Program-made: the position numbers and the translations under genes
Notes under the pieces: generated by a model
Database searches by the model: none
Seen by the model: only the letters and a program-made list of their open reading frames with translations
What the model was told of the DNA's origin: nothing
Part shown: positions 1-26,897 of the stretch, in pieces
How positions within the stretch are numbered: position 1 is the stretch's first letter
Layout of the letters: every line of letters starts with the position of its first letter
NCBI GenBank assembly: GCA_002269645.1
Contig: NIVC01000431.1
Span: forward strand, 1-54,266
From: Macrostomum lignano
Lineage: Eukaryota
Direction of reading: 5' to 3'
Length of the DNA: 54,266 nucleotides

Positions 1-684
1 TGAGTCAGGGTGTATTAAAGTGAAGGTTGAAGGTAAGGTAAAGGTGAATGTTAAGGTGAGTCAGGATGAGTTAAGGTGAGTCAAGAGGAGTTAAGGTGAG
101 TCAGAATGGGTTAAGGTGAGTCAGAATGGGTTAAGGTGATTCAGGATGATTTAAAGTGAGTCAGGATGCGTTAAGGTGATTCAGGATGATTTAAGGTGAG
201 TCAGGATGGGTTAAGGTGAGTCAGGATGGGTTAAGGTGAGTCAGAGTGAGTTAAGGTGAGTCAGGATGAGTTAAGGTGAGTCAGAGTGAGTTAAGGTGAG
301 TCAGGATGAGTTAAGGTGAGTCAGGATGGGTTAAGGTGAGTCAGGATGAGTTAAGGTGAGTCAGGATGGGTTAAGGTGAGTCAGGATGAGTTAAGGTGAG
401 TCAGGATGGGTTAAGGTGAGTCAGGATGAGTTAAGGTGAGTCAGTGAGTTAAGGTGAGTCAGGATGAGTTAAGGTGAGTCAGGATGGTTAAGGTGAGTCA
501 GGATGAGTTAAGGTGAGTCAGGATGGGTTAAGGTGAGTCAGGATGAGTTAAGGTGAGTCAGGATGGTTAAGGTGAGTCAGGATGAGTTAAGGTGAGTCAG
601 AGTGAGTTAAGGTGAGTCAGGATGAGTTAAGGTGAGTCAGGATGGGTTAAGGTGAGTCAGGATGGGTTAAGGTGAGTCAGGATG
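1..684. repeat. Minisatellite, ~20-bp unit GAGTTAAGGTGAGTCAGGAT, cut by the window start
   Basis: About 30 near-identical tandem units read directly; degenerate at 1-60. Confidence 0.97.
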
Positions 685-1512
685 AGTCCGACTGAGTCTA
701 TGTTGAGGGTGTTCACTCTAATGCAACAGAAGAGTATAGTCACTTTAGGCAGCCACAATACTGTAAATAAATTTTTATACACAAGTTTTATCCAAAGCTT
801 TACGAGCTACCTGCACCAATTAAAGCGCACTGATAAGCAACCAAATTTTTTAATTTTTAATTAAAGCCATAATCTTAAACTTCCTGTACATGCCAACATC
901 TTGAAAAAAAGAATTTTTGCAATAATTCTTTTCTTGTAAATAAAAGTAAACTAAGGCGGCTCTGTGCTTATTGATGTTTGTCTGGAGTCCAGAGGTTTAT
1001 TATTTTGCTCTTAGCTAATCTGGCATCTTACCAAACAGTTTCTTAAACCGATTCCTTTAATCGATTGTTTTGAGTAAGTTGGTGATAAAATTTAAAACTG
1101 CGATTGTCAAAGCAACCAATCTAAAATCAGTTAATTATATGAAGCAGAAAAATCATCACATCGATAAAAAATTAGGATTTACAAAATTTAGCCAGGAAAC
1201 AGTAAGTAGGTAGCATTAATATTGTAGTTGCAACTATTTAAATTAATGATAACATTACAATAGGAAAATCATATAAATGACTAATTATAAATACCCGCAA
1301 GCAGACGGTCGGAAGTTAACATTAACGTCGTTTGTAGCGACGCAACAAAATTTTAGTTGGTGTCTTTCCTGGTTAAATTCACCCAATTTTTTGTGAAGAT
1401 TTTGTACAAACTAGCACCCAATGGGGAGGGATTTTCGGTCGGGTCCAGGGGTGGGTCAGAAGCAGGTCAAGGCAGGTCACAAGTCAGAAGTCACGCGTAG
1501 GGGTCAGGTCAG

Positions 1513-3302
1513 TCACACTCGTCGCTTGATGCCGAAATCCTCGAAGTCCAGCATGGCGTCTTCCTCCTTGGAGACGTGCAGGATTCTTCGTTGCAGGCCG
1601 ATGCTGGCCGGCTTAAAGTTCTCTCCGTCGTTGGCCTCCTTGATGGATTTGACGGCTTCCACGGTCTGAGGAATTTTTTCAATTGGTTTTGGTTGCATTT
1701 CGTAAAAAACCATAAACATTTAATGTCAGGTATACTCTACTGACAAAAGTAGAAATGAAAACATTTTTTCGAGAATTTTCGTAAAAATCTATAGATGTTT
1801 CATGCAAGAGATACTCTACTGAAGAAAGTAGAAATGGAAACATTTTTCGATAACTTTTTCTACCAACAGTAAACATAAAAGCATTTTATGCATTTTAGGT
1901 TTTTGCATAGATCAAATTATGTGAGCTTTTTCTCACCCAGTCGAAGACGGCGAATGCGGCCGGACTCTGCAGGGCCATCTCGCGCCTGTCGATGCCGCTG
2001 AGAATCTGCTGACTGCGCGCGGCGATGCGCGGATCAACGCTGGTAGCGTCGAAGCCACCATTGGCGAGGCGTTCGACGCCCTTCAGCAGCGGCTGGCAGC
2101 GCTTCCATTTCTGGAGGGAATTCATTGAAATGGGCGCGCTTGTTGTCAGTGAGAGGCTTCATCACTGATTTGAAGAGGGAGAATCTGCAGTGCGCACTTC
2201 GATCTTAAACTAATTGCATTTCATTTGCTTCCCGAATTCCCTCCATTTCTCTACCGGAATCCCCTCCATTTCTCTACCGGAATTCCCTCCATTTCTCTAC
2301 CGGAATCCCCTCCATTTCTCTACCGGAATCCCTCAATTTGTCTCCATGAATTCCCTCCATTTCTCTACCGGAATCCCTCCATTTCTCTCCATGAATTCCC
2401 TCAATTTCTCTACCAGAATTCCCTCCATTTCTCTACCGGAATTCCCTCCATTTCTCTACCGGAATCCCCTCCATTTCTCTACCGGAATCCCCTCCATTTC
2501 TCTACCGGAATTCCCTCCATTTCTCTACCGGAATCCCTCAATTTGTCTCCAGGAATTCCCTCCATTTCTCTACTGGAATCCCTCCATTTCTCTACTGGAA
2601 CCCCTCCATTTCTCTACCGGAATCCCTCAATTTGTCTCCAGGAATTCCCTCCATTTCTCTACCGGAACCCCTCCATTTCTCTACTGGAATTCCCTCCATT
2701 TCTCTACCGGAATTCCCTCCATTTCTCTACCGGAATCCCCTCCATTTTTCTACCGGAACCCCTCCATTTCTCTCCATGAATTCCCTCCATTTCTCTACCG
2801 GAATTCCCTCCATTTCTCTACCGGAATCCCCTCCATTTTTCTACCGGAACTCCCTTCATCTACGCCTGGCCAAGTCCCAAGCTGCTGCTGCAGCCAGTCA
2901 AACGCTCACCCTGGTCCGTTTTTCATAGTTGCCAGCCAGCAGCAGCAGGGCCCGCACAGTTTTGTGCACCGACTCCACCGGTCGCTGGTAGGCCCGAAGC
3001 TCCAGCAGGCTGCGCGCTGTCATCATCGACTGCTGCTGTTGCTTCTTTTGCATGTCAACGCTGTTCAACTTCCGTTCGCGTTCGATCAGCTCGTCAGCTT
3101 CTTCCAGCTCTGAGCGCAGCATCAGCCGCTGATTGTCTGTCAGACTCTCCGACTTCACCTGCTCCACCAGCTGGGTCAGCCGGCCGACACTGCGATACTT
3201 CTTCGATCGGCTGATGGCCGAGCGGAGGACTGCGGAGTATGAGCGGGTCTTGCTGCAGACAGACAGACAGACAGACAGACAGACGGACAGACAGACGGAC
3301 AG

Positions 3303-3344
<42 letters not shown>

Positions 3345-6300
3345 GGACAGACAGACAGACGGACAGACAGACGGGCAGACAGACGGGCAGACAGACAGAC
3401 AGACAGACGGACAGACAGACAGACAGACAGACGGGCAGACAGACGGGCAAACAGACGGGCAGACAGACGGGCAGACAGACGGGCAGACAGACGGACAGAC
3501 AGACGGGCAGACAGACGGGCAGACAGACGGGCAGACAGACAGACAGACAGACGGGTAGACAGACGGGCAGACAGACGGGCAGACAGACGGGCAGACAGAC
3601 GGGCAGACAGACGGACAGACAGACGGACAGACAGACGGACAGACAGACGGGCAGACAGACGGGCAGACAGACGGACAGACAGACGGGCAGACAGACAGAC
3701 AGACAGACGGACAGACAGACAGACAGACAGACGGGCAGACTCACTTTTCCGCTGCTCCAGAGCGTGCAGTGTCAGCTTGGCCTCCTTGAGCTTCTTCACC
3801 TCGCGCTCCTTCAGCATGATCCGCTCGGCAGCGGCCTCGGTCTCGGAGATGGCATCGCCAATTCTGTCGGCGTTGCGCGGCTTGGCCAGCAGGGCGGAGT
3901 CGAGCTCGGCAAAGCGCAGCTTCAGCTGCTCCCGCCGCGGCGAAGTCTTGGAACCTCCGGCGCCCTGCTGTTTGGCCGTTGGCTGGCCTCTGCCCTGCGA
4001 TTGTTCGATAGAGAAAAAAGCCATCAGCTGAGATTTTAACTATAAAAGCTTTTCTCGTAAAACTGTCACTCACGGTAAAGCTACTCACAGTAGTCACTGC
4101 TCTACCGGGCGACACACCACCAGAAGGCCGAGGCGATCTGACGGGCGGAAGCGTTTTCTGCTTCGAAGAATGAGAAGCAGCAACTGGCTGCTCCTGTGGC
4201 TGCTTTGTTGGCTTCCTTTGATCTTTAGCGGCTTGTGCCTCGTCAGCTGCGAAAGCTGCCGGTTGAGCCTCCCCGGCTGGGGTAGCTTCCGGTTGAGCCT
4301 CCTCGGCTGGAGCAGCTTCCGGTTGAGTCTCCTCGGCTGGGGCAGCATCCGGTTGAGCCTCCTCGGCTGGGGTAGCTTCCGGTTGAGCCTCCTCGGCTGG
4401 GGTAGCTTCCGGTTGAGCCTCCTCGGCTTGAGCGGCTTCCGATTGAGTCTCCTCGGCTGGGGCAGCTTCCGGTTGAGCTTCATCAGTCACTGGCTGCGCA
4501 TCATCGGCTGGGGTAGCTTCCGGTTGAGCCTCCTCGGCTTGAGCGGCTTCCGGTTGAGTCTCCTCGGCTGGGGCAGCTTCCGGTTGAGCCTCCTCGGCTT
4601 GAGCGGCTTCCGGTTGAGTCTCCTCGGCTGGGGCAGCTTCCGGTTGAGCTTCATCAGCCACTGGCTGCGCATCATCGGCTGGGGTAGCTTCCGGTTGAGC
4701 CTCCTCGGCTGGGGCAGCTTTTGGTTGAGCTTCATCAGCCACTGGCTGTGCATCATCGACTGGAGCATCTTCCGGTTGAGCCTCATTTTTTGGGATAGCT
4801 TCCGGTTGAGCCTCATCAACCACTGGCTGCGCATCCTCGGCTGAAGCAGCTTCCGGTTGAGCCTCGGCTTGAGCGGCTTCCGGTTGAGTCTCCTCGGCTG
4901 GGGCAGCTTCCGGTTGAGCTTCATCAGTCACTCGCTGCGCATCATCGGCTGGGGTAGCTTCCGGTTGAGCCTCATCAACCACTGGCTGCGCATCCTCGGC
5001 TGAAGCAGCTTCCAGTTGAGCCTCCTCGGCTGGGGCAGCTTCCGGTTGAGCATCGTCGGCTGGGGCAGCTTCCGGTTGAGCCTCATCTTTTGGGGTAACT
5101 TCCGGTTGAGCCTCATCAGCCACTGGCTGCGCATCCTCGGCTGGGGTAGCTTCCGGTTGAGCCTCATCAGCCACTGGCTGCGCATCCTCGGCTGGGGTAG
5201 CTTCCGGTTGAGCCTCATCAGCCACTGGCTGCGCATCCTCGGCTGGGGCGGCTTCCAGTTGAGCCTTCTCGGCTGGTGCAGCTTCCGGTTGAGCCTCATC
5301 GGCTGGGGCTGCTTCAGGTTGAGCTTTTTCTATTGGGGCAGCTTCCGGTTGTGCCTCATCAGCCACTGGCTGCGCACCCTTGGCTTGGGTAGCTTCCGGT
5401 AGAGCCTCCTCAGCTGGGCCAGCTTCTGGTTGAGCCTCATCGGCTGGGGCAGTTTCCGGTTGAGCCTCCTCGGTAGAGACAGCTTCCGGTTTAGCCTCAT
5501 CGGCAGAGGCAGCTTCTGGTTTAGCCTCATCGGTAGAGGCAGATTCCGGTTGAGCCTCATCGGTAGAGGCAGCTTCCGGTTTAGCCTCAGCGGCAGAGGC
5601 AGCTTCCTGTTTAGCCTCATCGGTAGAGGCAGCTTCCGGTTGAACTTCATAGACTTGGGCAGCTTTCGCTTGATCCTCACCAGCCACTGGCTGCGCATCC
5701 TCGGCTGGGGCAGCTTCCGGTTGACCATCATTAGCGGAGGCAGCTTCTGGTTTAGGCTCATCGGTTGAGGCAGTTTCTCGTTGAGCCTCATCAGCAACTG
5801 TCTGCGCATCCTCGGCTGGGGCAGCTTCCGGTTTAGCTTCTTCGGTTGAGGCATCTTCTAGTTTAGCCTCCTTGGTCAAGGCAGCTTCCGGTTGAACCTC
5901 ATCAGCTTGTGAAGCTTCTTGCGCTTGAGCCTCATCGGCTTGAGCAGCTTCTTCTGGTTGAGCGTCATCGGCTTGAGCAGCTTCTTCTGGTTGAGCGTCA
6001 TCGGCTTGAGCAGCTTCTGGTTGAGCCTCATCGGCTTGAGCAGCTTCTGGTTGAGCCTCCTCGGCTGGAGCAGCTTCCTTTTGAGCATCATCGGATTGAG
6101 CAGCTTCTTCTGGTTGATCGTCATCGGCTTGAGCAGCTTCAGATTGAGCCTCATCGGCTTGAGCAGCTTCCTTTTGAGCATCATCGGGTTGTGCAGCTTC
6201 CTTTTGAGCATCATCGGATTGAGCAGCTTCTTCTGGTTGAGCCTCATCGGCTTGAGCAGCTTCCGGTTGAGCCTCACTGGCTTGAGCAGCTTCCGGTTGA

Positions 6301-8682
6301 GCCTCACTGGCTTGAGCAGCTTCCGGTTGAGCCTCATCGGCTGGAGCAGCTTCCTTTTGAGCATCATCGGATTGAGCAGCTTCTTCTGGTTGATCGTCAT
6401 CGGCTTGAGCAGCTTCCTTTTGAGCATCATCGGATTGAGCAGCTTCTTCTGGTTGATCGTCATCGGCTTGAGCAGCTTCCTTTTGAGCATCATCGGATTG
6501 AGCAGCTTCTTCTGGTTGATCGTCATCGGCTTGAGCAGCTTCAGATTGAGCCTCATCGGCTGGAGCAGCTTCCTTTTGAGCATCATCGGGTTGTGCAGCT
6601 TCCTTTTGAGCATCATCGGATTGAGCAGCTTCTTCTGGTTGAGCCTCATCGGCTTGAGCAGCTTCCGGTTGAGCCTCACTGGCTTGAGCAGCTTCCGGTT
6701 GAGCCTCACTGGCTTGAGCAGCTTCCGGTTGAGCCTCATCGGCTGGAGCAGCTTCCTTTTGAGCATCATCAGATTGAGCAGCTTCTTCTGGTTGATCGTC
6801 ATCGGCTTGAGCAGCTTCCTTTTGAGCATCATCGGATTGAGCAGCTTCTTCTGGTTGATCGTCATCGGCTTGAGCAGCTTCAGATTGAGCCTCATCGGCT
6901 TGAGCAGCTTCCTTTTGAGCATCATCGGGTTGTGCAGCTTCCTTTTGAGCATCATCGGATTGAGCAGCTTCTTTTGGTTGAGCCTCATCGGCTTGAGCAG
7001 CTTCCGGTTGAGCCTCACTGGCTTGAGCAGCTTCCGGTTGAGCCTCATCGGCTTGAGCAGCTTCCGGTTGAGCCTCATCGGCTTGAGCAGCTTCCGGTTG
7101 AGCTTCATCGGCTTGAGCAGCTTCCGGTTGAGCATCATTGGCTTGAGCAGCTTTTTCTGGTTGAGCGTCATCGGCTTGAGCAGCTTCCGGTTGAGCCTCA
7201 TTGGCTTGAGCAGCTTCAGGTTGAGCCTCATCGGCTTGAGCAGCTTCCTTTTGAGCATCATCGGCTTGTGAAGCTTCCTTTTGAGCGTCATCGGCTTGAG
7301 CAGCTTCCGGTTGAGCCTCATTGGCTTGAGCAGCTTCCTTTTGACCATCATCGGATTGAGCAGCTTCTTCTGGTTGAGTGTCATCGCTTTGAGCAGCTTC
7401 TTTTTGAGCGCCATCGGCTTCAACAGCTTCCTGTTGAGCGTCATCGGCTGGGGCAGCTTCCTTTTGAGCCTCATCGGCTTGAACAGCTTCCTGTTGAGCG
7501 TCATCGGCTGGGGCAGCTTCGTTTTGAGCCTCATCGGCTTGAACAGCTTCCTGTTGAGCGTCGTCGGCTGGGGCAGTATCAGGTTGAGCGTCATCAGCTG
7601 GAGCAGCTTCCTTTTGAGCATCATCGGATTGAACAGCTTCCGGTTGAGCCTCATTAGCTTGATCAGCTTCCGGTTGAGCCTCATTAGCTTGAGCATCTTC
7701 AGCTTGGGAATCATTCTCTTGTGCGTTGTGCTCTTGATAAGCTTCTAATTTAGCTTCATCAGCTTGAGCAGCTTCTTTTCGCTGAGCGTCATCGCCTTGA
7801 GCAGCTTTCGGTTGAGCATCGTCGGCTGGAGCAGCTTCCGGTTGAGCATTGTCGGCTGGAGCAGCTTCTGGTTGAGCATCGTCGGCTGGAGCAGCTTTTG
7901 GTTGAGCCTCATCGGCTTGAGCAGCTTCTAATTGCTTAGTCCCTCCAAGGGGCTCCGCAGCTGGTTCAGGTGCCGTGTCCTGTCTTACTGACACTCTGTC
8001 GCCTTCACTACGGCCGTTCTTAGGGCTCTGTTGACGGATGAAAAAGTTTGGAAGTGACAAATATGTTTATAGTCGAGTACATCGATAGGCTCGTACTATG
8101 GAGTAGACAAGTAGATTTGATTGGCTGTTATTATGCTCGTAAATAGTGCAAAAATATAACGTCGGTATCAAATGCGTATGAAATAATAAAGCGGTGATGT
8201 AAACAGGCCTTCCTTAAAGTGTGAGCAGATCGCTGACTTTCGCGCCACCCTGTGTGAGCGCGTGTGCATGAGTGCGTGCCTGCGTGCAACATTGGCGAGC
8301 TCGTGTGTGCTCAGGAGTGAGCGGAGACGATGTCGCTGAAGGCATGTTACCGGGGTGCCCACGGCCCTTTTGTACTCGTAATAATAATTATTATTATTAT
8401 TATGCTAGTAATTCATTTTTTGGTAACTCTGTAAGACTCAGTAATGAAAGACTCAGTTATGAAATGTTTTGAGCACAAGTATTCAACTTCATACGGTTAT
8501 AATTGTGCAAATTTGGCTACAGAATTCACGCTAGCCAGCAGGTAACCTATTGAAGTTAGTGTTGAAGCGCTTGCAAACTTGCTATGTCGGTAATGCATTT
8601 TTCAGAGAAAACCAGCAATGAAAGCGAAGCAACTCACCGCCGCCCGCTGCTCAGCAGCCAACTCAGTCGAGGCTTCTGTCAT
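1513..8682 (-). CDS. Gene A: ~1626-aa protein, giant acidic repeat plus hillarin-type C-terminal helical module
   Basis: Hand-spliced exons 8682-8638, 8027-4089, 3994-3745, 3229-2910, 2110-1937, 1665-1513. All introns are GT-AG with compatible phases (0,0,1,0,0); total 4881 nt = 1627 codons. The C-terminus (ELRAYQRP...LLLAGNYEKRTRKWKRCQPLL...DPRIAARSQQIL) is clearly paralogous to gene B. The first exon (MTEASTELAAEQRAA) is the least certain. Confidence 0.8.
2225..2850. repeat. Intronic minisatellite, ~22-bp unit CCCTCCATTTCTCTACCGGAAT(T/C)
   Basis: Tandem units fill most of the gene A intron 2909-2111. Confidence 0.95.
3256..3740. repeat. Intronic (CAGA)n / CAGACAGACGGG compound microsatellite
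   Basis: Fills the gene A intron from just after the GTGAGT donor (3744) to near the acceptor. Confidence 0.97.
4250..7910 (-). repeat. Coding tandem repeat, 30/33-bp units encoding AAQADEAQPE / AAPAEEAQPE-type decapeptides
   Basis: Open frame kept across ~3.6 kb; unit lengths are multiples of 3; higher-order blocks recur. Confidence 0.95.
8246..8359 (+). repeat. Dispersed ~110-bp element, copy 1
   Basis: CACCCTGTGTGAGCGCGTGTGCATGAGTGCGTGCCTG...GGGGTGCC aligns by eye with 18024-18148 and with the reverse complement of 38565-38631. Confidence 0.75.
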
Positions 8683-9102
8683 CTCGCAACTTCGGTGTGA
8701 CTGACCCTACTGGCCCGCGTTTTTAACTTTTTGACTCAAACGAAAGTCTGTTACGAGCTAAAGCTAACCAACTCGCTCCGAGTCTGAGACCGCCGGAATT
8801 TATCAGCTGTCACCCACTTTATTGTCTCTCTCTCTCTTCACTATGACAACGGCGGGCGTTCTTCATTTATCTTTAGGACTGGACTTTCTCTCTCTCTCTC
8901 TAGCTGAGATTAGACAACTAAACTAACAAGTTCAGACCCAGCAAAGAATCGACAGCAACACAGTTTGTTCGCAAGTGCAGGTTAATAGAGAGAAAGACAC
9001 GATTAAGAGACCAAAAAAACACACGCAGCAATGCTTGCTTGCGTTCACTCCTTGCCAACCAGCGACTCGAACGTCGAGCAGGGGGGAGGGGGAGAGTTGG
9101 CG

Positions 9103-9116
9103 GTTTCCATAACAAC
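9103..9116. promoter_or_regulatory. Candidate RFX X-box GTTTCCATAACAAC upstream of gene A
   Basis: Fits the 14-bp consensus GTHNYYATRRNAAC exactly; ~420 bp 5' of the proposed gene A ATG. Confidence 0.55.
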
Positions 9117-9878
9117 CGGTGTGAAGCGGCGAGTGACGTTTCTGTGTCATAATCATATCTTTGCCAATCTAGCCTAGCAGTACCTCTCCCCCAGAGTGCA
9201 TTAGGGTGCGAGACCGCGCTGTTTCATAATGAATATCTGGCAGTTTCTGCTGGGCAAAAACGGCTTACATGTATTCTGGCAGTCAAAGTTCGCTTGATAA
9301 ATATTTGTTCTTGGAAAATATTCTTTAGAATAAAAACTGGAACGTTGCTACAAAGCGTTGCGCTTCTCTAAGTAAACTTGGTTTGTTTTCAGATGTTGCT
9401 GGTGTACGAGTATAGTAAATGGCTTTAGAATGTATTATATATTTTCTAACATGAAGCAGTATGACTATACCGGTAGGTAAGGATAAAGCAGTAATTTTAT
9501 TCGGTTATGCATGTTCATTCAACAGTGTCTTGGTGGTTGATTTACAATAATTCTATACATGTAGGTTCGATCTTTTATGCGGTCAGAGGGGTCGTGGGCA
9601 ACGATGCCCAATAGTTATTAATCACTTATAATAAACAACTAAATAATAATATTATTAAAGTATTAATTTACTAAGTTATTATATACTATATTTATTATAA
9701 CAAATATTAATAATAACTTCATATGAATGTTAATAACAAGATAATGCTGTATACTAAAAGAATACTTAATTATAATAAAAGTAATATTTGATACAAAAGA
9801 TATCTAATAATAAGTTGTCATGACTACAGATAGAATTAACGCAGTACCGCGGACCCCTTAAAGACATTGTATACAGTT

Positions 9879-12800
9879 CTATAATTTGACATTGTTGGAC
9901 CTCGTCTTGCCAATTCCGGTCCGTAATTTTGAACTGGCAACGGAGGCGCCGCTAACGCTGCCAGTCTCCGAGTCGGAATTGTACTTGGCGTCCTCCGCGG
10001 GCGTCACGCCCAGAATGCGGGCCTGCTGTCGCACGCTGGCCGGCTTGAAGCGGTCCGGCGGAGTGGCTCGCTCTATTGTTGCAACAGTTTTCACGCCCTG
10101 TGGATGTAAAATATAAGATTAAGGCGTGTCTTTGCTAAGGCCCGTGCCGATCTTGAACTTGGAAATGCTGGCAATAAATATTCTAAATATTTAATCATCC
10201 TTTGGTAAAGAAACAAAAATTTTCTGAATTTCTGAATACTAAACTAACAAACCCGGAGAAAATTCACGAATCCTGAATTAACAAACGCTGAGAAAATAAA
10301 CAAATCCTAAATTAAAAAAAACTCGGCAGGAAATTCACGAACTCTAAAGAACAAACGCAGTGAAAAATCAGAAACCTTAAGTTAACAAACTTCGAGACAT
10401 TTCACGAATCCTAAATTAACTACTGTGAAGGAAATTCACGAATCCTATATTAACAAACCCGGAAAAACTCACGAATCTTGAATTTAAAAAATTCAGAGGA
10501 ATTAACAAACACGAAAGTAACGTCTTGAAGCTGTGAAGCCTTCGTTCCTCACCCATTCATAGAAAGCGAAGGCGGCAGCACTGCGCTGTTCAACCTCTTG
10601 AGCGTCGATGCCGGCTAGGATCTGCTTGCTTCTGGCAGCGATGCGCGGATCGACGCGGGTCACGTCCAGCGCGTCCATGTCGTGCAGGATGGTGCGGAGC
10701 AGCGGCTGGCAGCGCTTCCATTTCTGTCTTTTGGGAAACGGGGTGGATATAGTTTCAAACCGGTTCGTTTGGGGCAGTACATAATTTTTTTTCCGAGAAG
10801 CAGAGAAGAACACATGCAAAGACGTTAAATTGACAAGTCAAGTTTAGAGGCCTGATCTCTTTAGGTCTGTAAGAACTTGCATGAGGATATGTAACACATT
10901 TTGGATGCAGGATCTGTATGAGCTAGGATTCGTAGGACTTTAAGAACCTTGTATGACCTGTAGGATTTCGTACGGTCTGAAGGATCTGTGTGACCTGTAG
11001 GATTCACAGGACCTTCAGGATTTGTATGACTTGTAGGATTCTTAGGACTCGAAGGATCTGTTTGACCTGTAGGATTTCGTAGAACTCGAAGGATCTGTAT
11101 GACCTGTAGGATTCGTTAGGACTCGAAGGATTTGTATGACCTGTAGGATTTCGTACGGTCTGAGGATCTGTGTGACCTGTATGATTTCGTACGGTCTGAG
11201 GGATCTGTATGACCTGTAGGATTTCGTACGGTCTGAGGATCTGCGTGACCTGTAGGATTTCTTACGATCTGAGGATCTGTGTGACCTGTAGGATTTCATA
11301 CGGTCTGAGGATCTGTGTGACCTGTAGGATTTCATACGGTCTGAGGATCTATGTGACCTGTAGGATTAGTAGGACTCGCGAGGATCTGTATGACCTGTAG
11401 GATTCGCTAGGACTCGAAGGATCTGTATGACCTGTAGGATTTCGTACGGTCTGAGGATCTGTGTGACCTGTATGATTTCGTACGGTCTGAGGATCTGTGT
11501 GACCTGTATGACTAGTAGGACTCGAAGGATCTGTATGACCTGTAGGATTTCGGTATGACCTGTAGGATTTCGGTATGACCTGTAGGATTTCGGTATGACC
11601 TGTAGGATTTCGGTATGACCTGTAGGATTTCGGTATGACCTGTAGGATTTCGTACAGTCTGAGGATCTGTGTGACCTGTAGGATTTCGTACGGTCTGAGG
11701 GATCTGTATGACCTGTATGACTAGTAGGACTCGAAGGATCTGTATGACCTGTAGGATTTCTTAGGATCTGAGTGACTCTAAATTAGTATCTAAAGAATCA
11801 GTCGAATCCCTCGATTTCTTAAAGGACCAAAAGTGAACAACAGTAAAAACTGGCCGCCAACTCGCCCTAGTCCGCTTCTCGTAGTGTCCGGCCAGCAGCA
11901 GCACAGCCTGCACGGCACCGTGGACCGCGTCCTGCGGACTGGAGTACCGTCTGAGCTCCGTGAGGCTGCGCGAGTTCGCTCCCAGCCGGTGCCGCGGCTG
12001 CCTCGCACGCCGATTGTAACGCCACATCGCCTGTCGAGCTGCCGTCGCCTCCGCCGATACCAGCTTGGCCGCAACCGACGTCTTTGACATCGACGTAGCC
12101 GAAGTTGAGGTCAGGCCGAGATCGTCGAGCTCGCTTAGTAGGCGACGAAGCCGATGAACATCTGTCTGTTCGACAGCGCGCTGCAGATCTACATGTAAAA
12201 GCGTAGAACGTTTCAGAAGTGTCCCGAATCTATGATTATTATCCAATTATAGGTAGCTAAATACGCCACGCAAAAATATACGTGGAAAGCTAAATTTACC
12301 TACTGAATCCAACTGCACGATTAATTTAGCTGAGTTGCTAACAGGAACCAATTAGCTAAAGGACCCAATGGCGTACGCAGGAATTTTAATTGGACTGAGC
12401 GCCCCAATTTTTCAGTGTCTTGGTTGACACCTCAATCTTCTAGGTGGGCGCCCCTGTCTTCTGGTGGGTGCCCCTGTCTCTTGGTGGGCGTCCCTGTCTC
12501 TTGGTGGGTGTCCCTGTCTCTTGGTGGGTGTCCCTGTCTCTTGGTGGGCGCACCTGTCTCTTGGTGAGTGCCCCTGTCTCTTGGTGGGCGTCCCTGTCTT
12601 TTGGTGGGTGCCCTTGTCTTTTGGTGGGTGTCCCTGTCTATTGGTGGGCGTCCCTGTCTTTTGGTGGGTGTCCCTGTCTATTGGTGGGCGTCCCTGTCTT
12701 TTGGTGGGTGTCCCTGTCTATTGGTGGGCGCCCCTGTCTTTTGGTGGGTGTCCCTGTTTATTGGTGGGCGCCTATAAGCGCTAGATTATTCAAAACAACC

Positions 12801-15800
12801 CCTGGACGCCTCAGTACAGCCTTGCCAAGCCTCCAAATTTCATCACATGTCCCTGCACCAAACTCTGACTTCGTTGATCACTGACCTTTACCCATGGGAA
12901 ACTTCTGGACCTTCAACAGGTGGCACCAGGATACTCTACTTGACACTCTATTTCGAATTTCTCTAGTTTCGCTGAGCAAACCTCAACTGCTGGGCTCATT
13001 CACTCACCAACTTTGAGATCGATAGCAGCCAGCACTAAGCACGCCTTGCCAGCTAGCTTCCGTGACACCGCCGCTCCCTGCTGATCCTTCAATGCCGCTT
13101 CTATCATGTCCGAATTCGCTGCCGCTATCGCCTCTTCCAGACGCTGACACGCCGTGGTGTCGGCCGCAGCAGCCGCGGCAGATGCAGCTTCCTCGTCGCC
13201 CTCGCCCTCGCCGTCGACTCGCCATCGCCGCCAGCGTCGCCGTCGCCGTTGCTCAATCAGCCTTACTGTCTCCAGTCGACTCTGACGTCGAGCTAATCGA
13301 TTTGCCGCCTCATCCAGGAAGTCGCTGGCTCCGATCTCCGAAGTGGTTATCGACCCGAAAACTCTGACAGGATGGCAGCGGAGCACTCGCCATTCGCCGT
13401 CATCATTCCGGGCCCCGGCTGAGCGCAACAGTTTTAGCAAATAGTTGCCAGGCAGGCAAAATCGACAAGAAATTGAGCTTCCATCGTCAGACAAAGTTGC
13501 AACGGCTCCCTCTGCCGGCACCAAATCAGCCTCGGCCTCGGCCATCTCGCCGTCATGTCGCCGTCGTTCCCAACCTCGAGGGCGCCAGGCCACGCGGAGC
13601 AGCTCGACACGTTCAACTGTCTCCTTGACCGTATCGACCGGTACAGACAGTTCTGCGGCAGTTGTCGCTTTGTACGGCTCGCCAAAGACGTCTTTGGACG
13701 CGTCTGACGCTGCCGACTCCACCAGGCGCTGCCAGTTCGGCTGCGGCTGCTGCCGCCAGGCGGCTCCGTCGGCGTCGTCGGAGCCGCAGTCAGCTGCCAC
13801 CAGGAACTGACAGACGGGCCGGTCGCGCACACGCAACACCAGAGCGAATTGGCCGCCGCCGGCCGGTGCGTAAAAATGTACACCGAGTCTGGACAGGTAG
13901 GCCGTGCCGGGTGGGGTCAGACGATCACCCTGCTGGTAGACACGGCAGGTGAGCCTCAGGTAGCCATCACCGTCAATGTGCATCAATGCGACGGCCGCTT
14001 CACCATTTGATGCCGATAGTTCACCGTTGGCAATGTCGCAGCCGAGCTCTAGACTGCCACCTGTAGCGGTGTTTCTCGTTGATATGTAACTGTGATTTCG
14101 TAGTGTGGTCTTCATTAAGGATACTCTCTAAAGTATTGTGAGAATTGTGGTCTAATTGGTACTGATCTAGCTGTGGGAACTGTGGCCTAATTGGTACTGA
14201 TCTAGCTGTGGGAACTGTGGCCTAATTGGTACTGATCTAGCTGTGGGAACTGTGGTCTAATTGATACTGATCTAGCTGTGGGAACTGTGGTCTAATTGAT
14301 ACTGATCTAGCTGTGGGAACTGTGGCCTAATTGGTACTGATCTAGCTGTGGGAACTGTGGCCTAATTGGTACTGATCTAGCTGTGGGAACTGTGTGGTCT
14401 AATTGGTACTGATCTAGCTGTGGGAACTGTGGTCTAATTGATACTGATCTAGCTGTGGGAACTGTGGCCTAATTGGTACTGATCTAGCTGTGGGAACTGT
14501 GTGGTCTAATTGGTACTGATCTAGCTGTAAGGACTGTGGTCTAATTGGTACTGATCTAGCTGTAAGGACTGTGGTCTAATTGGTACTGATCTAGCTGTGG
14601 GAACTGTGTGGTCTAATTGGTACTGATCTAGCTGTGGGAACTGTGGTCTAATTGTAAGGTCAAAAGGGTCAAACCTGAACTGTCACTCCTGGGCGGCCCA
14701 AACTCGGACAGCTCGCCAGACGGGAACCCGCAACCGCCGTCGCCGCTCCCGCACCCTACTGGGCAATGCAGCGCAAAGCCAACAAAGCAATCGTCATATT
14801 GATAGTCATCGTCTTCCGTTAACAGCCGAATCTCCAAGTAGAATTTTCCTGGCCAAGGCGGCTCCACCTTGAATTTCAACACGCCGTCTCGATCGGTGCG
14901 AATTGGCCGGCTGACGCTGCAGTCGCCCGGCTGACGGCCGTCGATGGTGTTCGACAGACAGCGAAGGACGCTCGTGTAGCGACAGGGCAGGTGACGCCTT
15001 TGTTGAGTCTCTCGGAGCTCCAACTCGAGCAGCTCGCCCGGCCGGCCAAGGACAACATTCCACGGCCAGTTTAGGACGGCTAATCGGCCAGAGTGGCGCT
15101 CGAACTCCCCAGCCGTGCCGCCGGCGAGGTAAACGGGCATCCGGTCGAACTCCGACTTGGTGAGCGGTCGGGCGAGCAGCTGCCAGACGGCTGGTGAATC
15201 GGTACTTTTATCGTCGCTATTAGCATCAAGCTGGCAGGGCAGGTGGGTGATGACGAACTGCTCCGGGTCGGTCAGGAAGAAGAACTCCCTGGAGTCTGTG
15301 TCGGCCGCCATCGCCGCCCAGCCAATGTCAACCAGTCGCCATTCGCCTCGCACAAAACAGGCAAACCAGCTGCCGCCCACCGGGGTGCGAAAGCCGGGGG
15401 CCAAGCCGGCACCTTTCTTGTACCCGAGAACTCGTTGGAACGGAATGCCAGCCTCGCTGCGTGGAGATGCGAAAGTTGGTTTTCTACTTAGTCAGATGAT
15501 CAAACAGCTATTTTAAGCATTTCCACAATCTTAAACTGAAGTCACGTTAATTACCAACCTGAGCAGTTTGGCAAACACCTCAGAGTGTCTGTCCTCTCCC
15601 TTGGAGTCAGTCGATTCCGCCATCCGTCGCAGAGTCCTATAGACCGTCAGTTGAAGTTCCGACTCCGTCTTAACGAGTCTCCCAGGCCTGTTGCTGACTG
15701 CGCACACAAACCCGAACGCCGCTCTCAGTCGTTCGAGGTCGCCGCTGCATCGTCTGTACAGACGTTGGCACAAGCTTGCCCAGCTGTCATCTGGCTGCGG

Positions 15801-16055
15801 CAACTCCTCGGCTGACTGAGCGTCAATTGTCACAATGTCCGCTGGCTGTTTTTGAAACTGCAGTAGCAGCTCAGCCTTGGTGCGTCGCGGCGGGAACGGA
15901 GGCGGTGGTGGCTGCCGGACGTCGTCAAGCTGCTGCTGGTCCTCTCTGGGCGGCTGTCCCAGCTTGCGCTGGCTTGTAGCCAGGCTCTGCGGCGTCGGGT
16001 ACTGGCCTGACTGCAGCCGCTCACGAATAGAACTCGAGTGGTCTAATGCATAGTC
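9879..16055 (-). CDS. Gene B: hillarin / kyphoscoliosis-peptidase (KY)-like protein with a degenerate transglutaminase-like domain, at least 1014 aa, 5' end unresolved
   Basis: Exons 16055-15559, 15456-14675, 14060-13008, 12188-11866, 10723-10553, 10097-9879; phases compatible; 3045 nt. Motifs AGIPFQRVLGYKKGAG, GEWRLVDIGW, EFFFLTDPEQFVITHLP and WQLLARPLTKSEFDRMP are typical of the KY/hillarin/Cyk3 family. One donor is GC (11865). Confidence 0.85.
10215..10490. repeat. Degenerate ~40-bp tandem repeat (AATTCACGAATCCTAAATTAACAAAC core) in a gene B intron
   Basis: The core recurs about six times with divergence. Confidence 0.7.
10900..11770. repeat. Intronic minisatellite, ~38-bp unit GATCTGTGTGACCTGTAGGATTTCGTACGGTCTGAG, with a shorter sub-array near 11540-11650
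   Basis: Read directly; lies in the gene B intron 11865-10724. Confidence 0.95.
12443..12775. repeat. Intronic minisatellite, 20-bp unit GGTGGGTGTCCCTGTCTYTT
   Basis: About 16 tandem units in the gene B intron 13007-12189. Confidence 0.95.
14145..14652. repeat. Intronic minisatellite, ~35-bp unit GGTCTAATTGGTACTGATCTAGCTGTGGGAACTGT
   Basis: About 14 units in the gene B intron 14674-14061. Confidence 0.95.
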
Positions 16056-16369
16056 CTGCGGAGATGTTTAATTAGTTAGACTAATTAGCCTAAAATTACC
16101 GATGGAGTCATCAAACAAAAGCAATTTCTACTAGATGGTAGCTATTTTTCTAAATCGATTTGAAGGCTGGTTTAAGCAAATCTATTTGATACTTGATGGG
16201 AAATGTTTTATAAAGATTAAACCAAGTTCCTCAAAACAATCGTAGCAGCTTTTCATAGCAAAAATAAATTTACACCGTCGTCAAAGATTACAGTCGTCGA
16301 AACTCGACTGAGGACAAGGCCCGCCTGAAGACCCTAAAAAAAGCCAAAAACGTTTGCTCGCAATGAACC

Positions 16370-17455
16370 AGAGGCGTTCTCTTGCGACGAACCAGAGACG
16401 TTCACTCGAGACGAACCAGAGACATTGACTCGAAACGAAATCAGAGACGTTCACTCGAGACGAACCAGAGAAATTCACTCGAAACGAAATCAGAGACGTT
16501 CACTCGAGACGAACCAGAGACATTCACTCGAGACGAACCAGAGACGTTCACTCGAGACGAACCAGAGAAATTCACTCGAGATGAAATCAGAAACGTTCAC
16601 TCGAGACAAACCAGAGACGTTCCCTCGAGACGAACCAGAGAAATTCACTCGTAACGAAATCAGAGACGTTCACTCGAGACGAACCAGAGACATTCACTCG
16701 AAACGAAATCAGAGACGTTCACTCGAGACGAACCAGAGACATTCACTCGAGATAAAATCAGAGACGTTCACTTGAGACGAAATCAGAGACGTTCACCCGA
16801 GACGAACAAGACGATCGATCACCAGACGTTCACTCGAGACGATCACCAGACGTTCACTCAAGACGAAATCAGAGACGTTCACGTACTCGAGACGAACCAG
16901 ACGATCGATCACCAGACGTTCACTCGAGACGATCACCAGACGTTCACTCAAGACGAAATCAGAGACGTTCACGTACTCGAGACGAACCAGACGATCGATC
17001 ACCAGACGTTCACTCGAGACGATCACCAGACGTTCACTCAAGACGAAATCAGAGACGTTCACGTACTCGAGACGAACCAGACGATCGATCACCAGACGTT
17101 CACTCGAGACGATCACCAGATGTTCACTCAAGACGAAATCAGAGACGTTCACGTACTCGAGACGAACCAGACGATCGATCACCAGACGTTCACTCGAGAC
17201 GATCACCAGACGTTCACTCAAGACGAAATCAGAGACGTTCACGTACTCGAGACGAACCAGACGATCGATCACCAGACGTTCATTCGAGACGATCACCAGA
17301 CGTTCACTCAAGACGAAATCAGAGACGTTCACGTACTCGAGACGAACCAGACGATCGATCACCAGACGTTCACTCGAGACGATCACCAGACGTTCACTCG
17401 AGACGATCACCAGGCGTTCACTCAAGACGAAATCAGACACGTTCACTCGAGACGA
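16370..17455. repeat. Composite minisatellite: ~24-bp GAGACGAACCAGAGACGTTCACTC units changing into a 90-bp higher-order unit
   Basis: The 90-bp period is shown by the 30-aa periodicity of ORF 16772-17533. Confidence 0.95.
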
Positions 17456-17684: not shown

Positions 17685-17885
17685 GTAAAGCAAGCATCCT
17701 GCAGATAGCAAGCATCCACCCAGATAGCAAGCATCCCCCAGATAGCAAGCATCCACCCAGATAGCAAGCATCCCCCAGATAGCAAGCATCCACCCAGATA
17801 GCAAGCATCCCCCAGATAGCAAGCATCCACCCAGATAGCAAGCATCCCCCAGATAGCAAGCATCCACCGAGATAGCAAGCATCTC
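17685..17885. repeat. Minisatellite, 19/20-bp unit CAGATAGCAAGCATCC(A)CCC
   Basis: About 10 tandem units. Confidence 0.93.
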
Positions 17886-18148: not shown

Positions 18149-19132
18149 TGCAGTACTTCTACAATTATTAACTTTAGTGCGAACTAACCTGCAGTGGAAT
18201 CTCAGCTTCCGTTAGCCGGTAATGTCGATAGTAGCTCAGAGTTTCCAGGAAAGACATCTCAGAATGCTCTCTCTCGATCGCTCTCTCTCTCTCACTGAAG
18301 TTCTCCTCCTCCGTTAGTAGAGCTTTCTAAACATTTTGGTTGCTAAGCATAAAAACCTGACTTGAAAAAATTTAAGTAAGGAGCCACGTGTGTGCATGGC
18401 TAAGGAGCATTCCTAACACGCTCGTACTCACCAGAGCCAGCGAAATTCTTCGCAGATTCTTAGCTGTTCTTAGATTTCTTAGCCTCGGGTCTTCTGAGCC
18501 CCTGCAGTGGCTGCAAGACTGAAGCACAGGCCGCATTGGCTTATCTGGTTTTAACTTTGCATTTTTCCTTCTCTATACTTGCAGCGTATCGTTAAAAATG
18601 TCACTTCTCTGTACTCTGCGATGTACAGGCACCGGCTAGTTTACACTCTGTATAGGAGTCTTTTATGAGTCTTTAGTAAGACAATAACTTTATCGCCTAT
18701 TTTCGTCCAAAATATTGAGAAAGCAATTAAAGTCCATGTCGATGATTTAACAACTAATTAATTAGTGGTGCGAAATTAACAATGGAATTTTGTAGCACCT
18801 GTTTCGCGACCTTGTGACACAAATCAGGGAGCTGTTTTGATATGAATCAGCGCATTTTGAGGCATTATCAAGAGGTATATTGTTGGCTTGTGACACCAAT
18901 TTAGGACTCCAATTATCTTAATGGAATGTAATATCAAAAGAAGCATTTAAAAGTGCTTTTATCTATTTAACATTACACGCAAATAGCATTTCAATGAAAT
19001 CCGGCTTTGTTGAAATGTTTCTTAAACACGCCAGGAGTCCTAAACTTTTACCAGAAATGCAGATCTGCAACAACCATCAAGGTAAATCACAATTATGATC
19101 ATAACTATACAAGTTAGGTATGTAGGTCAAGG

Positions 19133-25426: not shown

Positions 25427-26897
25427 ATGGCGCTCCGGCCAACACTAGCTTTGCTCCTAGCCCTGTCATCCGTGCTCACTCTAACAACCGCTGTACCCAG
25501 CGACTGGATTGAGTACACTCCGGGCACGTGCAATATCGTCATCTCCTCGCCGCATGGCGGCTCCAAGCGGGTGTCCGAAATCCCGGACGACCGAACCGAC
25601 GGCTGCTTGGACGGTGGCAACGTCTGCCGATGGGAGAAAGGCTGCAGCCCGGCCGATGGCAGCAAGTGCAGGGCGAGCACCTTCAGGGACTCCTACACTC
25701 AAGAGGCAGGTTACCTGTGGCTAATGGTCAGGAAGGATGCTAAAGGATACTACGAGCTATGCTCATATTTCGAAGGACTTTAGAGTTCTGCATACAGAAA
25801 CTTTTTCAAGTACCTTCGTGAAAATCAAGCGTTTAAAATACACGACGGCATTCCACTGCAGATTGCGGCCATGGTTGTGCAGCACCTTAGCGATACCTAC
25901 GGTTGCCAGCCACACTTTGTCCGGTCCAACGTGCACCGTAGCAAGATGGACCCCAATAGGGAGCCGGCCGAGGGCACACAGGGAGACCCTGTCGCTCTGG
26001 AGGCCTGGCAGAAGTACCACGACGAGTACATGTCATCGGCGGTGGCCGCCATTCGATCCCAGTGGGTCAAAGGTCTGGTCTTCGACATCCACGGCCAGAC
26101 GCATGCTGAGCAGTGGACTGAGCTGGGATACCTGTGCGTTGCATTGTTGCTTTTAGACACTTTTATTTAGACTCACATCCACTGAGAATGCAGTGTGTGT
26201 CTCTAGACATGCACTAACATCCACTGAGAATGCAGTGTGTCTCTAGACATGCACTAACATCCACTGAGAATGCAGTGTGTACATCTAGACATGCACTAAC
26301 ATCCACTGAGAATGCAGTGTGTGTCTCTAGACATGCACTATAACATCCACTGAGAATGCAATGTGTGTCTCTAGACATGCACTAACATCCACTGAGAATG
26401 CAGTGTGTGTCTCTAGACATGCACTATAACATCCACTGAGAATGCAATGTGTGTCTCTAGACATGCGCAAACATCCCCTGAGAATGCCCAACACTGAATT
26501 CTCAATCAACCATTGGCGCAGAGTCTCCGGCTACAGACTGGACAACACTCCCAGCGACCTCGCTAGCAGCAGCATCCGTGGCCTGTGGAGCCGCAGCGGC
26601 GCTGACTCTGCCGCCACCAGCAGCCTGCTGACCGGAGCCAAGAGCCTCGGTTCTATGCTGGAGAAGCGAGGCCAGAAGGTGGTGCCTGGCCCGACCTACC
26701 CGTCACCGAACGGCGGCAACTATTTCAGCGGCGGCTACATTGTCGAACGGTACGGCTCGCTGGCCTCCGGAGAGGTCGACTCCATCCAGGTGGAAATTCC
26801 GCGGGAAATCCGATTCGACTCTGCCCGAAGGGCCGCCTTCGCCGCCGATCTGGCCGCTTCGATTGACGAGTTTCGAAAGTCGAATGGCTACGCCTGA
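25427..26897 (+). CDS. Secreted N-formylglutamate amidohydrolase-like (zinc peptidase fold) protein, ~308 aa
   Basis: Exons 25427-25705, 25862-26133, 26522-26897 (927 nt). Signal peptide MALRPTLALLLALSSVLTLTTA. Motifs ISSPHGG, RDSYTQE, HRSKMDPNR, GLVFDIHGQ, ELGYL, YFSGGYIVERYG and IQVEIPREIR. Intron 1 needs a GC donor. Confidence 0.8.
26175..26470. repeat. Intronic minisatellite, ~42-bp unit CATCCACTGAGAATGCAGTGTGTGTCTCTAGACATGCACTAA
   Basis: About 7 units in intron 2 of the FGase-like gene. Confidence 0.93.

Follow-up and report, generated by a model that had tools for sequence, protein, structure and literature searches.

How can two neighbouring genes end in the same protein module while nothing upstream of that module is common to them? 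The question is raised by genes A and B, an adjoining pair in a 54,266-nt stretch of contig NIVC01000431.1 from the flatworm Macrostomum lignano (the whole stretch is called the window below). Window bases 1-28,257 are positions 1-28257 of NIVC01000431.1 in the assembly Mlig_3_7, and locus L003 is their identical reverse complement. Both genes lie on the minus strand, and their models were built from stop-free stretches and splice signals in minus-strand coordinates (Table 1). Gene A has six coding exons and a product of 1626 aa; gene B has seven and a product of 1037 aa. A first-pass annotation, made from the letters of the window, took them for separate paralogues with one common C-terminal module and unrelated N-terminal bodies, which our analysis bears out. 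It did not recognise the module itself, which we identified as a homologue of the microtubule-binding domain (MTBD) of dynein.

Two Old Paralogues with a Common C-Terminal Module

The three coding exons at the 3' end of each gene correspond to each other in size (320/323, 174/171 and 153/219 nt in A/B), start in phases 1, 0 and 0 in both genes, and meet in identical alignment columns (junctions EKRTR/KWKRC and W/(T/G)V). The matching intron positions and phases claimed in the first-pass annotation were thus recovered, and the three motifs quoted there (LLLAGxYEKRTR/KWKRCQPLL, VDPRIAARSxQILxGID and FKPASxxxQxRIL) are present in both proteins. When the B tail was compared with gene A by tblastn, the three exons were found in order with E=1e-10, 1e-16 and 1e-4 at identities of 32%, 56% and 47%, respectively. 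For the third-last exon the Smith-Waterman score was 130 versus 30.5 +/- 5.7 for shuffled sequences, with 0/2000 shuffles scoring as high. Over the aligned module A and B share 42% identity, rising to 56% in the middle exon, and on these sequence comparisons they are old paralogues.

Upstream of these exons the likeness ends. The similarity between A exon 3 and the end of B exon 4 was not significant in the pairwise test (p=0.40), and the profile of the protein family to which B is assigned below gave ~0 bits (E=1.6-2) over the stretch holding A exon 3. No trace of the first 800 aa of B was detected by tblastn in window 1-9881. In the six-frame translation of the same interval, positions 1-640 of the family profile found no match, and the profile matched A exons 4 and 5 only. 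The statement that A carries no trace of the B body therefore stands. Remnants of KY exons, whether within A or upstream of it, were considered as a separate possibility, and none was found in the same tblastn and profile searches of 1-9881.

A pair of this kind might also be a single locus, either mis-assembled or provided with alternative 3' ends. A and B indeed adjoin on the same strand, 1.2 kb apart, and polycistronic, trans-spliced transcription units occur in M. lignano (PMC5730564). However, a complete module, a stop codon and a downstream AATAAA all belong to B itself, A has its own ATG exon, and modules as different as these two are not assembly duplicates. The same B-then-A pair was moreover assembled independently at the homeologous locus L001 (NIVC01000040.1), and GenBank annotates the two genes separately, both as hypothetical proteins. 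We regard a single locus as very improbable; mis-assembly, which the first-pass annotation had named as a way in which its proposal could fail, is contradicted by the homeologous assembly.

The Module Is a Motor-Less Homologue of the Dynein MTBD

When 39 module sequences, those of A and B included, were combined in a profile, it matched 78 sequences in the PDB, and 60/60 of the matches listed fell at the dynein stalk/MTBD region. Among these the best was the yeast dynein MTBD 6kjn (E=1.1e-12); DNAH6, DYNC2H1 and mouse dynein-1 were also matched. The AlphaFold (AF2) model of A exons 4-6 reached a pLDDT of 91.1, and its top 17 Foldseek matches in the PDB were all dynein stalk/MTBD structures, with probabilities up to 1.00 and target-normalised TM-scores of 0.53-0.59 for isolated MTBDs. 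The model of the B module (pLDDT 73) had dyneins as its top nine matches. All six near-invariant positions of the family are kept in A. The module is a true motor-less homologue of the dynein MTBD: it has MTBD homology, lies outside the curated family PF12777 and is not a dynein.

The likeness to the dynein stalk/MTBD (PF12777 'MT'; PDB 6kjn, 3err, 6rza and 5ayh) extends over ~115 residues at profile level and includes the conserved pattern E..Y..P...H......LL.G...W...Q...W. The module is modelled as a six-helix bundle that follows a CC1-like helix and leads into a short CC2-like one, the same predicted arrangement as in dynein. The differences are equally clear. Neither an AAA nor a dynein motor domain was found in A or B by Pfam, the long antiparallel stalk is missing, and the module stands at the extreme C-terminus, within 60 residues of it in A and ~100 residues of it in B. 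The CC2-like helix is followed by a family-specific conserved tail, FKPAS..Q..IL..EED. Any binding by the A and B modules is predicted to be static, without regulation by ATP.

These differences leave room for an explanation in which the MTBD fold was kept and microtubule binding lost, so that A and B would offer alternative 'heads' to some other common partner, e.g., an axonemal or cortical protein. The missing stalk and AAA+ ring are the parts that set the binding register of dynein, the motifs invariant in the M. lignano clade (YEKRTRKWKRCQP, VDPRIAARS and FKPAS..Q..IL) are absent from dyneins, and the C-terminal FKPAS..EED helices have no dynein counterpart. Against this, the homology to the MTBD is clear at profile level (E=1e-12), and the 298-residue tail of A is basic (net charge +17, pI ~10), with a K/R-rich KRTRKWKR segment that suits the acidic surface of tubulin. 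The module also occurs on proteins named after the axonemal EFCAB5. A change of partner appears unlikely to us, though it is the strongest of the competing explanations, and microtubule binding is the function that we prefer for the module.

The Acidic Repeat Is Coding and Gene A Is Maintained

The first-pass annotation gave A an acidic repeat of ~1300 aa, and exon 2 was found to encode 1313 aa with a net charge of -309. Its basic unit is 30 nt long (AQPEAAQADE-like), its composition is dominated by A (31%), E (17%), Q (14%), D (11%) and P (11%), and no Pfam family was found in A residues 1-1328. The three minus-strand frames of exon 2 contain 0 (acidic frame), 6 and 125 stops. The strand contains little T (14%), and one further frame is interrupted by no more than six stops, so that the length of the open reading frame (ORF) is by itself weak evidence for coding.

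Other features of the exon are more telling. All 72 anchor motifs (72/72) lie in a single codon phase, and all their spacings (27, 30, 33, 51, 57, 60, 81 etc.) are multiples of 3. The same holds for the TRF periods in exon 2, unlike those of the nearby intronic minisatellites. The acidic frame is the sole frame open from the exon-2 acceptor, and its phase 0 fits both the 45-nt ATG exon and exon 3. At the homeologous locus exon 2 is 420 nt shorter and stop-free in the acidic frame only, and in the alignment of the two copies 28/28 gaps are multiples of 3. The acidic frame of exon 2 is a real coding frame. A non-coding minisatellite with an accidental ORF was considered as well and was excluded by frame conservation, splice phases, annotation and the homeolog.

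The gene annotated in GenBank beside PAA83161.1 starts at 8682, stops at 1513, spans 7170 bp and encodes 1626 aa, which are exactly the span and length of the A model. Its initial ATG is that of A exon 1, an exon conserved at 100% in the homeolog, where the GenBank gene begins at the same ATG. The donors of A are all GT, mostly GTGAG, and the exon 3/exon 4 junction (EQRK/ILRSAIS) agrees with the UniProt model P0003. As the GenBank annotation of M. lignano was derived from RNA-seq assemblies via StringTie, TACO and TransDecoder (PMC5730564), it provides indirect transcript support for the joining of the repeat exon to the C-terminal exons. The opposite case, a repeat that is not spliced to these exons, had been raised in the first-pass annotation and is contradicted by this transcriptome-based gene.

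Selection on A was estimated from the window copy and the homeolog copy, which differ at synonymous sites by a dS of ~0.05-0.06 and have an intron identity of ~95%. The 214 codons of the module carry 9 synonymous and 1 non-synonymous substitutions (ratio of non-synonymous to synonymous rates, dN/dS, 0.03), and the 358 codons of the whole non-repeat tail of A carry 13 and 7 (dN/dS 0.17). With these low values against the homeolog, A is under purifying selection and is a maintained gene, no decaying fragment.

The same data bear on the idea that A is a mere by-product, i.e., a 3' KY-MTBD fragment that was duplicated beside an expanding, stop-free, T-poor minisatellite and is transcribed without a selected function. 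The setting would suit such an origin. The region was found by TRF to be rich in minisatellites, in line with the published repeat content of the genome, 15% of which consists of tandem and simple repeats (PMC5730564). The repeat has a weak codon-position bias, and the minus-strand frame with six stops is the one used by the UniProt models. A by-product would, however, hardly show the dN/dS values given above, a single phase for all anchor motifs, or homeolog indels that are all multiples of 3. Nor would the acidic frame be expected to be the only one open from the acceptor, phase-compatible at both ends and flanked by consensus GTGAGT donors. Finally, the homeologous A is intact while the homeologous B carries a 750-bp deletion. 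We consider a functionless by-product improbable and retain A as a functional gene.

Gene B as a Divergent Member of a KY-Like Family from Which A Departs

A HMMER search with a profile of three M. lignano modules against 1.84 billion representatives returned 251 homologues at E<1e-3. In nearly all long homologues the module stands at or near the C-terminus. The Ig-like_KY domain was present in 8/8 and then in 32/45 long homologues (40/53 altogether), usually together with Transglut_core. The KY-bearing homologues come from molluscs (e.g., Patella, Lottia, Pinctada, Nucella, Ruditapes and Gigantopelta), annelids (e.g., Helobdella and Ridgeia) and M. lignano. We know of no such C-terminal module in vertebrate KY.

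Gene B fits this family over its length. Residues 63-1003 align with 241 bits (E=3e-75) to a profile built from 45 proteins that bear the module, 32 of which have Ig-like_KY, and phmmer with B residues 1-800 matched 25/45 family members. It has the same domain order as spiralian KY-like proteins in which Ig-like_KY (PF23265) is combined with an MTBD-like module at the C-terminus, examples being Lottia LOTGIDRAFT_233093, Helobdella HELRODRAFT_173674, Patella LOC126828203 and M. lignano BOX15_Mlig001984. Both Pfam domains score below their cut-offs in B: Transglut_core gave 14.7 bits (E=0.039; cut-off 23) and Ig-like_KY 13.5 bits (E=0.08; cut-off 27). In an alignment made by eye, the Cys and His positions of the Transglut_core consensus appear as E and S in B. 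On its sequence we take B as a divergent member of the KY-like / Ig-like_KY family. The transglutaminase-like core ascribed to B by the first-pass annotation is degenerate by its Pfam score, and it is the family profile on which the assignment of B depends.

Gene A lacks the whole KY/Ig body: the KY-module family profile that covers B end to end matches A at positions 648-898 only (117 bits). In a neighbour-joining tree of the modules, A, B, P0001, P0007 and P0175, all from M. lignano, were monophyletic in 99/100 bootstraps. A paired with P0001 in 64/100 bootstraps and with B in 20/100, so the A sequence may be closer to P0001 than to B. The P0001 locus includes KY-like exons, which lie upstream on its strand, and before the locus stands another KY-like gene that ends in the module; tandems of KY-MTBD genes are thus common in the M. 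lignano genome.

Since the A module nests in an M. lignano clade whose known bodies (B and the P0001 locus) are KY-like, phylogeny and parsimony suggest that A descends from a KY-bearing gene, has lost the body and is the derived form. Between paralogues as old as these, the body may have been lost through a partial duplication or a deletion, or an acidic Ala-rich linker of the kind seen in B (...GEGEGDEEAASAAAAAAD...) may have expanded. The first-pass annotation had proposed that a globular core was swapped for a disordered spacer after duplication. The derived state of A agrees with the KY bodies of 40/53 homologues and with the nested position of its module, while a literal swap would be only one way of arriving there.

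Two further tandem KY-like genes, each with the same terminal module, were seen at L002 (NIVC01002652.1) in 1-1052 and 3782-11062. The second of them is annotated merely as a 172-aa partial protein, PAA56222.1, with KY-like exons lying 2.5-6 kb upstream on the same strand.

The Same Module on Other Bodies

The module is not confined to KY-like proteins. In Branchiostoma it was found at or near the C-terminus of CLCA1-like proteins with CLCA and VWA domains (P0080/P0112; XP_035689228.1), and in chytrids it holds the same place in proteins (P0131/P0081) of the GAF/EF-hand type, one of them named EFCAB5 (KAJ3023323.1). A metagenome GAF/EF-hand protein (P0142) also carries it. The Branchiostoma and chytrid modules matched the M. 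lignano profile with E=1e-6 to 1e-8. Their bodies differ from that of A, with no giant acidic repeat in any of them, and the relationship is distant. In mammals, EFCAB5 is described as a protein of the sperm radial-spoke-3 stalk, without mention of an MTBD (PMC11779644).

With the module present on KY, CLCA/VWA and EFCAB5-named bodies, its recombination with different bodies is, as far as the sequences tell, recurrent, and the A/B pair is one extreme instance. The novelty claimed for the architecture in the first-pass annotation therefore applies to the acidic form of A, which is extreme, and does not extend to the shuffling of the module. In the literature, which was covered incompletely, we found no description of a KY-MTBD combination or of non-dynein MTBDs, an absence of evidence only. 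New, in our view, are the recognition of what the module is, its occurrence beyond dyneins, and a derivative as extreme as the acidic-repeat form.

A charged repeat next to the module was also noticed outside the window, in the M. lignano protein P0175 (UniProt A0A1I8FKJ7), where a long EAEAEEQRKREE-type repeat lies directly upstream of a helical region and the module. P0175 is perhaps another paralogue of the 'charged repeat plus MTBD' kind, and the N-terminal part of its model looks unreliable.

Proposed Roles of A and B

Our preferred reading, to which we give a probability of roughly 0.55, is that A and B belong to a lineage-specific M. lignano expansion of a family with MTBD-tethered bodies, and that A is a derived, microtubule-anchored polyanionic spacer. 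Both the microtubule binding of the module and the brush role of A are inferred here. Gene B would keep the ancestral body, a catalytically degenerate KY-like transglutaminase fold with Ig-like_KY, presumably a protein-binding scaffold, and would tether this pseudo-enzymatic KY/Ig scaffold to microtubules. In A the KY/Ig body is gone, a new 15-residue start exon and a single 3.9-kb coding minisatellite giving instead an intrinsically disordered polyanion of 1313 residues. The protein would sit through its MTBD on cytoplasmic, ciliary or sperm microtubules, with the long acidic brush projecting from them. The role envisaged for the brush is that of a spacer, entropic or electrostatic, or else of a sink that takes up cations or basic proteins, comparable to what projection domains do in classical microtubule-associated proteins (MAPs).

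In structural MAPs such as MAP2/tau and MAP1B an acidic projection domain is paired with a basic end that binds microtubules, and neurofilament side-arms are entropic brushes. A resembles such proteins in its long, disordered, charged projection, in its compact basic end with predicted microtubule binding and in its predicted role as a spacer. It is not related to MAP2/tau or MAP1B in sequence, its end is a folded dynein-type domain and not a set of tau repeats, and its projection, unlike those of MAPs, is a near-perfect 30-nt coding minisatellite. A wider generalisation, which we offer tentatively, is that the dynein MTBD has become a free-standing, motor-less microtubule anchor on unrelated bodies, with A as a new structural MAP in the form of an MTBD-anchored electrostatic brush.

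Several observations weigh against the preferred reading. The Foldseek E-values were modest (0.01-0.6). Neither A nor B alone matched PF12777 even at E<=1 (1/45 family members did, at 8.5e-4), and a single-sequence phmmer search with the B module against the PDB gave nothing significant, the best match being DNAH17 at E=0.8; it took the family profile to resolve the relationship. A static MTBD without the long antiparallel stalk may have a different partner. Substitutions in the repeat relative to the homeolog show a mild third-position excess (247/179/144) in a region where the alignment is unreliable. The equation of the 1626-aa GenBank product with the A model was drawn from equal span and length and from the single open frame of the 3.9-kb exon. 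Lastly, the homeologous A (L001 20031-26254) is annotated with 1435 aa in GenBank versus 1486 aa by the window splice pattern; the 51-aa difference may come from an additional intron annotated within the repeat.

Should the module bind microtubules, this family supplies naturally occurring dynein MTBDs that have no motor and in which no ATPase sets the binding state, which would be useful for work on the MTBD mechanism. It also offers a clean case of architectural turnover, in which an anchor under strong purifying selection had its body replaced by a fast-evolving coding minisatellite, and it suggests a testable role for the 'hypothetical' KY-like proteins of molluscs, annelids and flatworms. 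Major concepts are unchanged. The mechanisms concerned, namely duplication, the loss of domains and the expansion of repeats, are ordinary ones. RNA interference and in situ methods are in use in M. lignano. Transgenesis is established in the species (PMC5730564) and, together with these methods, makes the prediction directly testable there.

Gene Structures, Records and Surroundings

GenBank PAA83161.1 (BOX15_Mlig018178g1) and the B model are the same protein at every residue. The first-pass annotation let the gene begin at 16055, the upper end of the second coding exon; this is corrected by the ATG exon, which lies outside the coordinates then given (Table 1).

Table 1. Coding exons of genes A and B, minisatellite arrays and annotated neighbours in the window.
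Feature	Position	Strand	Length	Description
A coding exon 1	8638..8682	(-)	45 nt	ATG, MTEASTELAAEQRAA; donor GCGGCG/gtgagt, phase 0
A exon 2	4089..8027	(-)	3939 nt	1313-aa acidic repeat with 60-aa unique end
A exon 3	3745..3994	(-)	250 nt	helical, GRGQPT...LHALEQRK; ends phase 1
A exon 4	2910..3229	(-)	320 nt	start phase 1; CC1-like helix and first MTBD helices (predicted), ending ...LLLAGNYEKRTR
A exon 5	1937..2110	(-)	174 nt	phase 0; MTBD core KWKRCQPLL...AAFAVFDW
A exon 6	1513..1665	(-)		phase 0; CC2-like helix (predicted) and conserved FKPAS..Q.RIL..EED tail; TGA stop 1515-1513
B coding exon 1	18189..18257	(-)		ATG, MSFLETLSYYRHYRLTEAEIPLQ
B exon 2	15559..16055	(-)		N-terminal region and start of degenerate transglutaminase-like core
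B exon 3	14675..15456	(-)		remaining KY-like transglutaminase fold and first Ig-like_KY domain
B exon 4	13008..14060	(-)		more Ig-like region, R-rich then acidic/Ala-rich linker, helical repeats; ends phase 1
B exon 5	11866..12188	(-)	323 nt	start phase 1; homologous to A exon 4
B exon 6	10553..10723	(-)	171 nt	phase 0; MTBD core, homologous to A exon 5
B exon 7	9879..10097	(-)		phase 0; homologous to A exon 6, with longer Ser-rich end; TAG stop 9881-9879
Minisatellite array	50-687			period 20 nt
Minisatellite array	2234-2859			period 23 nt
Minisatellite array	3256-3740			period 12 nt
Minisatellite array	10234-10484			period 34 nt
Minisatellite array	10909-11772			period 36 nt
Minisatellite array	12443-12768			period 20 nt
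Minisatellite array	14137-14654			period 35 nt
Minisatellite array	16365-17455			period 24/90 nt
Minisatellite array	17689-17883			period 37 nt
Annotated neighbour upstream of B	~25427-26897	(+)		
Annotated neighbour upstream of B	from ~27181 upward	(-)		

The intron after B exon 5 is of the GC-AG type (window 11860-11865, ACTAGG/GCGAGT), and the GenBank junction agrees; the homologous donor in gene A is GT.

In the UniProt/WormBase ParaSite models of A (P0002, P0004 and P0003/P0168) the repeat exon is translated in the wrong frame, which gives a basic sequence (KLNRKL...). One of these gene-A-type proteins, P0004, was automatically named 'MT domain-containing protein' by UniProt, the sole public hint at the identity of the module. 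Entries related to A otherwise bear spurious automatic names, i.e., COG7, Vps54_N, MAGE, Transposase and BAG.

From the homeologous B copy (L001 16124-16217, corresponding to window 13519-12773) ~750 bp are missing, and with them exon 4 has lost its final ~170 codons and its donor. The annotated product of this copy is a truncated protein of 646 aa, PAA92778.1, in which the MTBD module is absent; the adjoining A copy is intact.

Minisatellites occupy most introns of A and B, and one more array lies directly downstream of A. The 35-nt array in B intron 3 measures ~0.5 kb in the window versus ~2.1 kb at the homeolog. Upstream of B the annotation places two neighbours, a 308-aa gene with a faint FGase match and a 197-aa gene with an AKAP28 domain (PF14469); both are present at the homeologous locus, where their order is kept.

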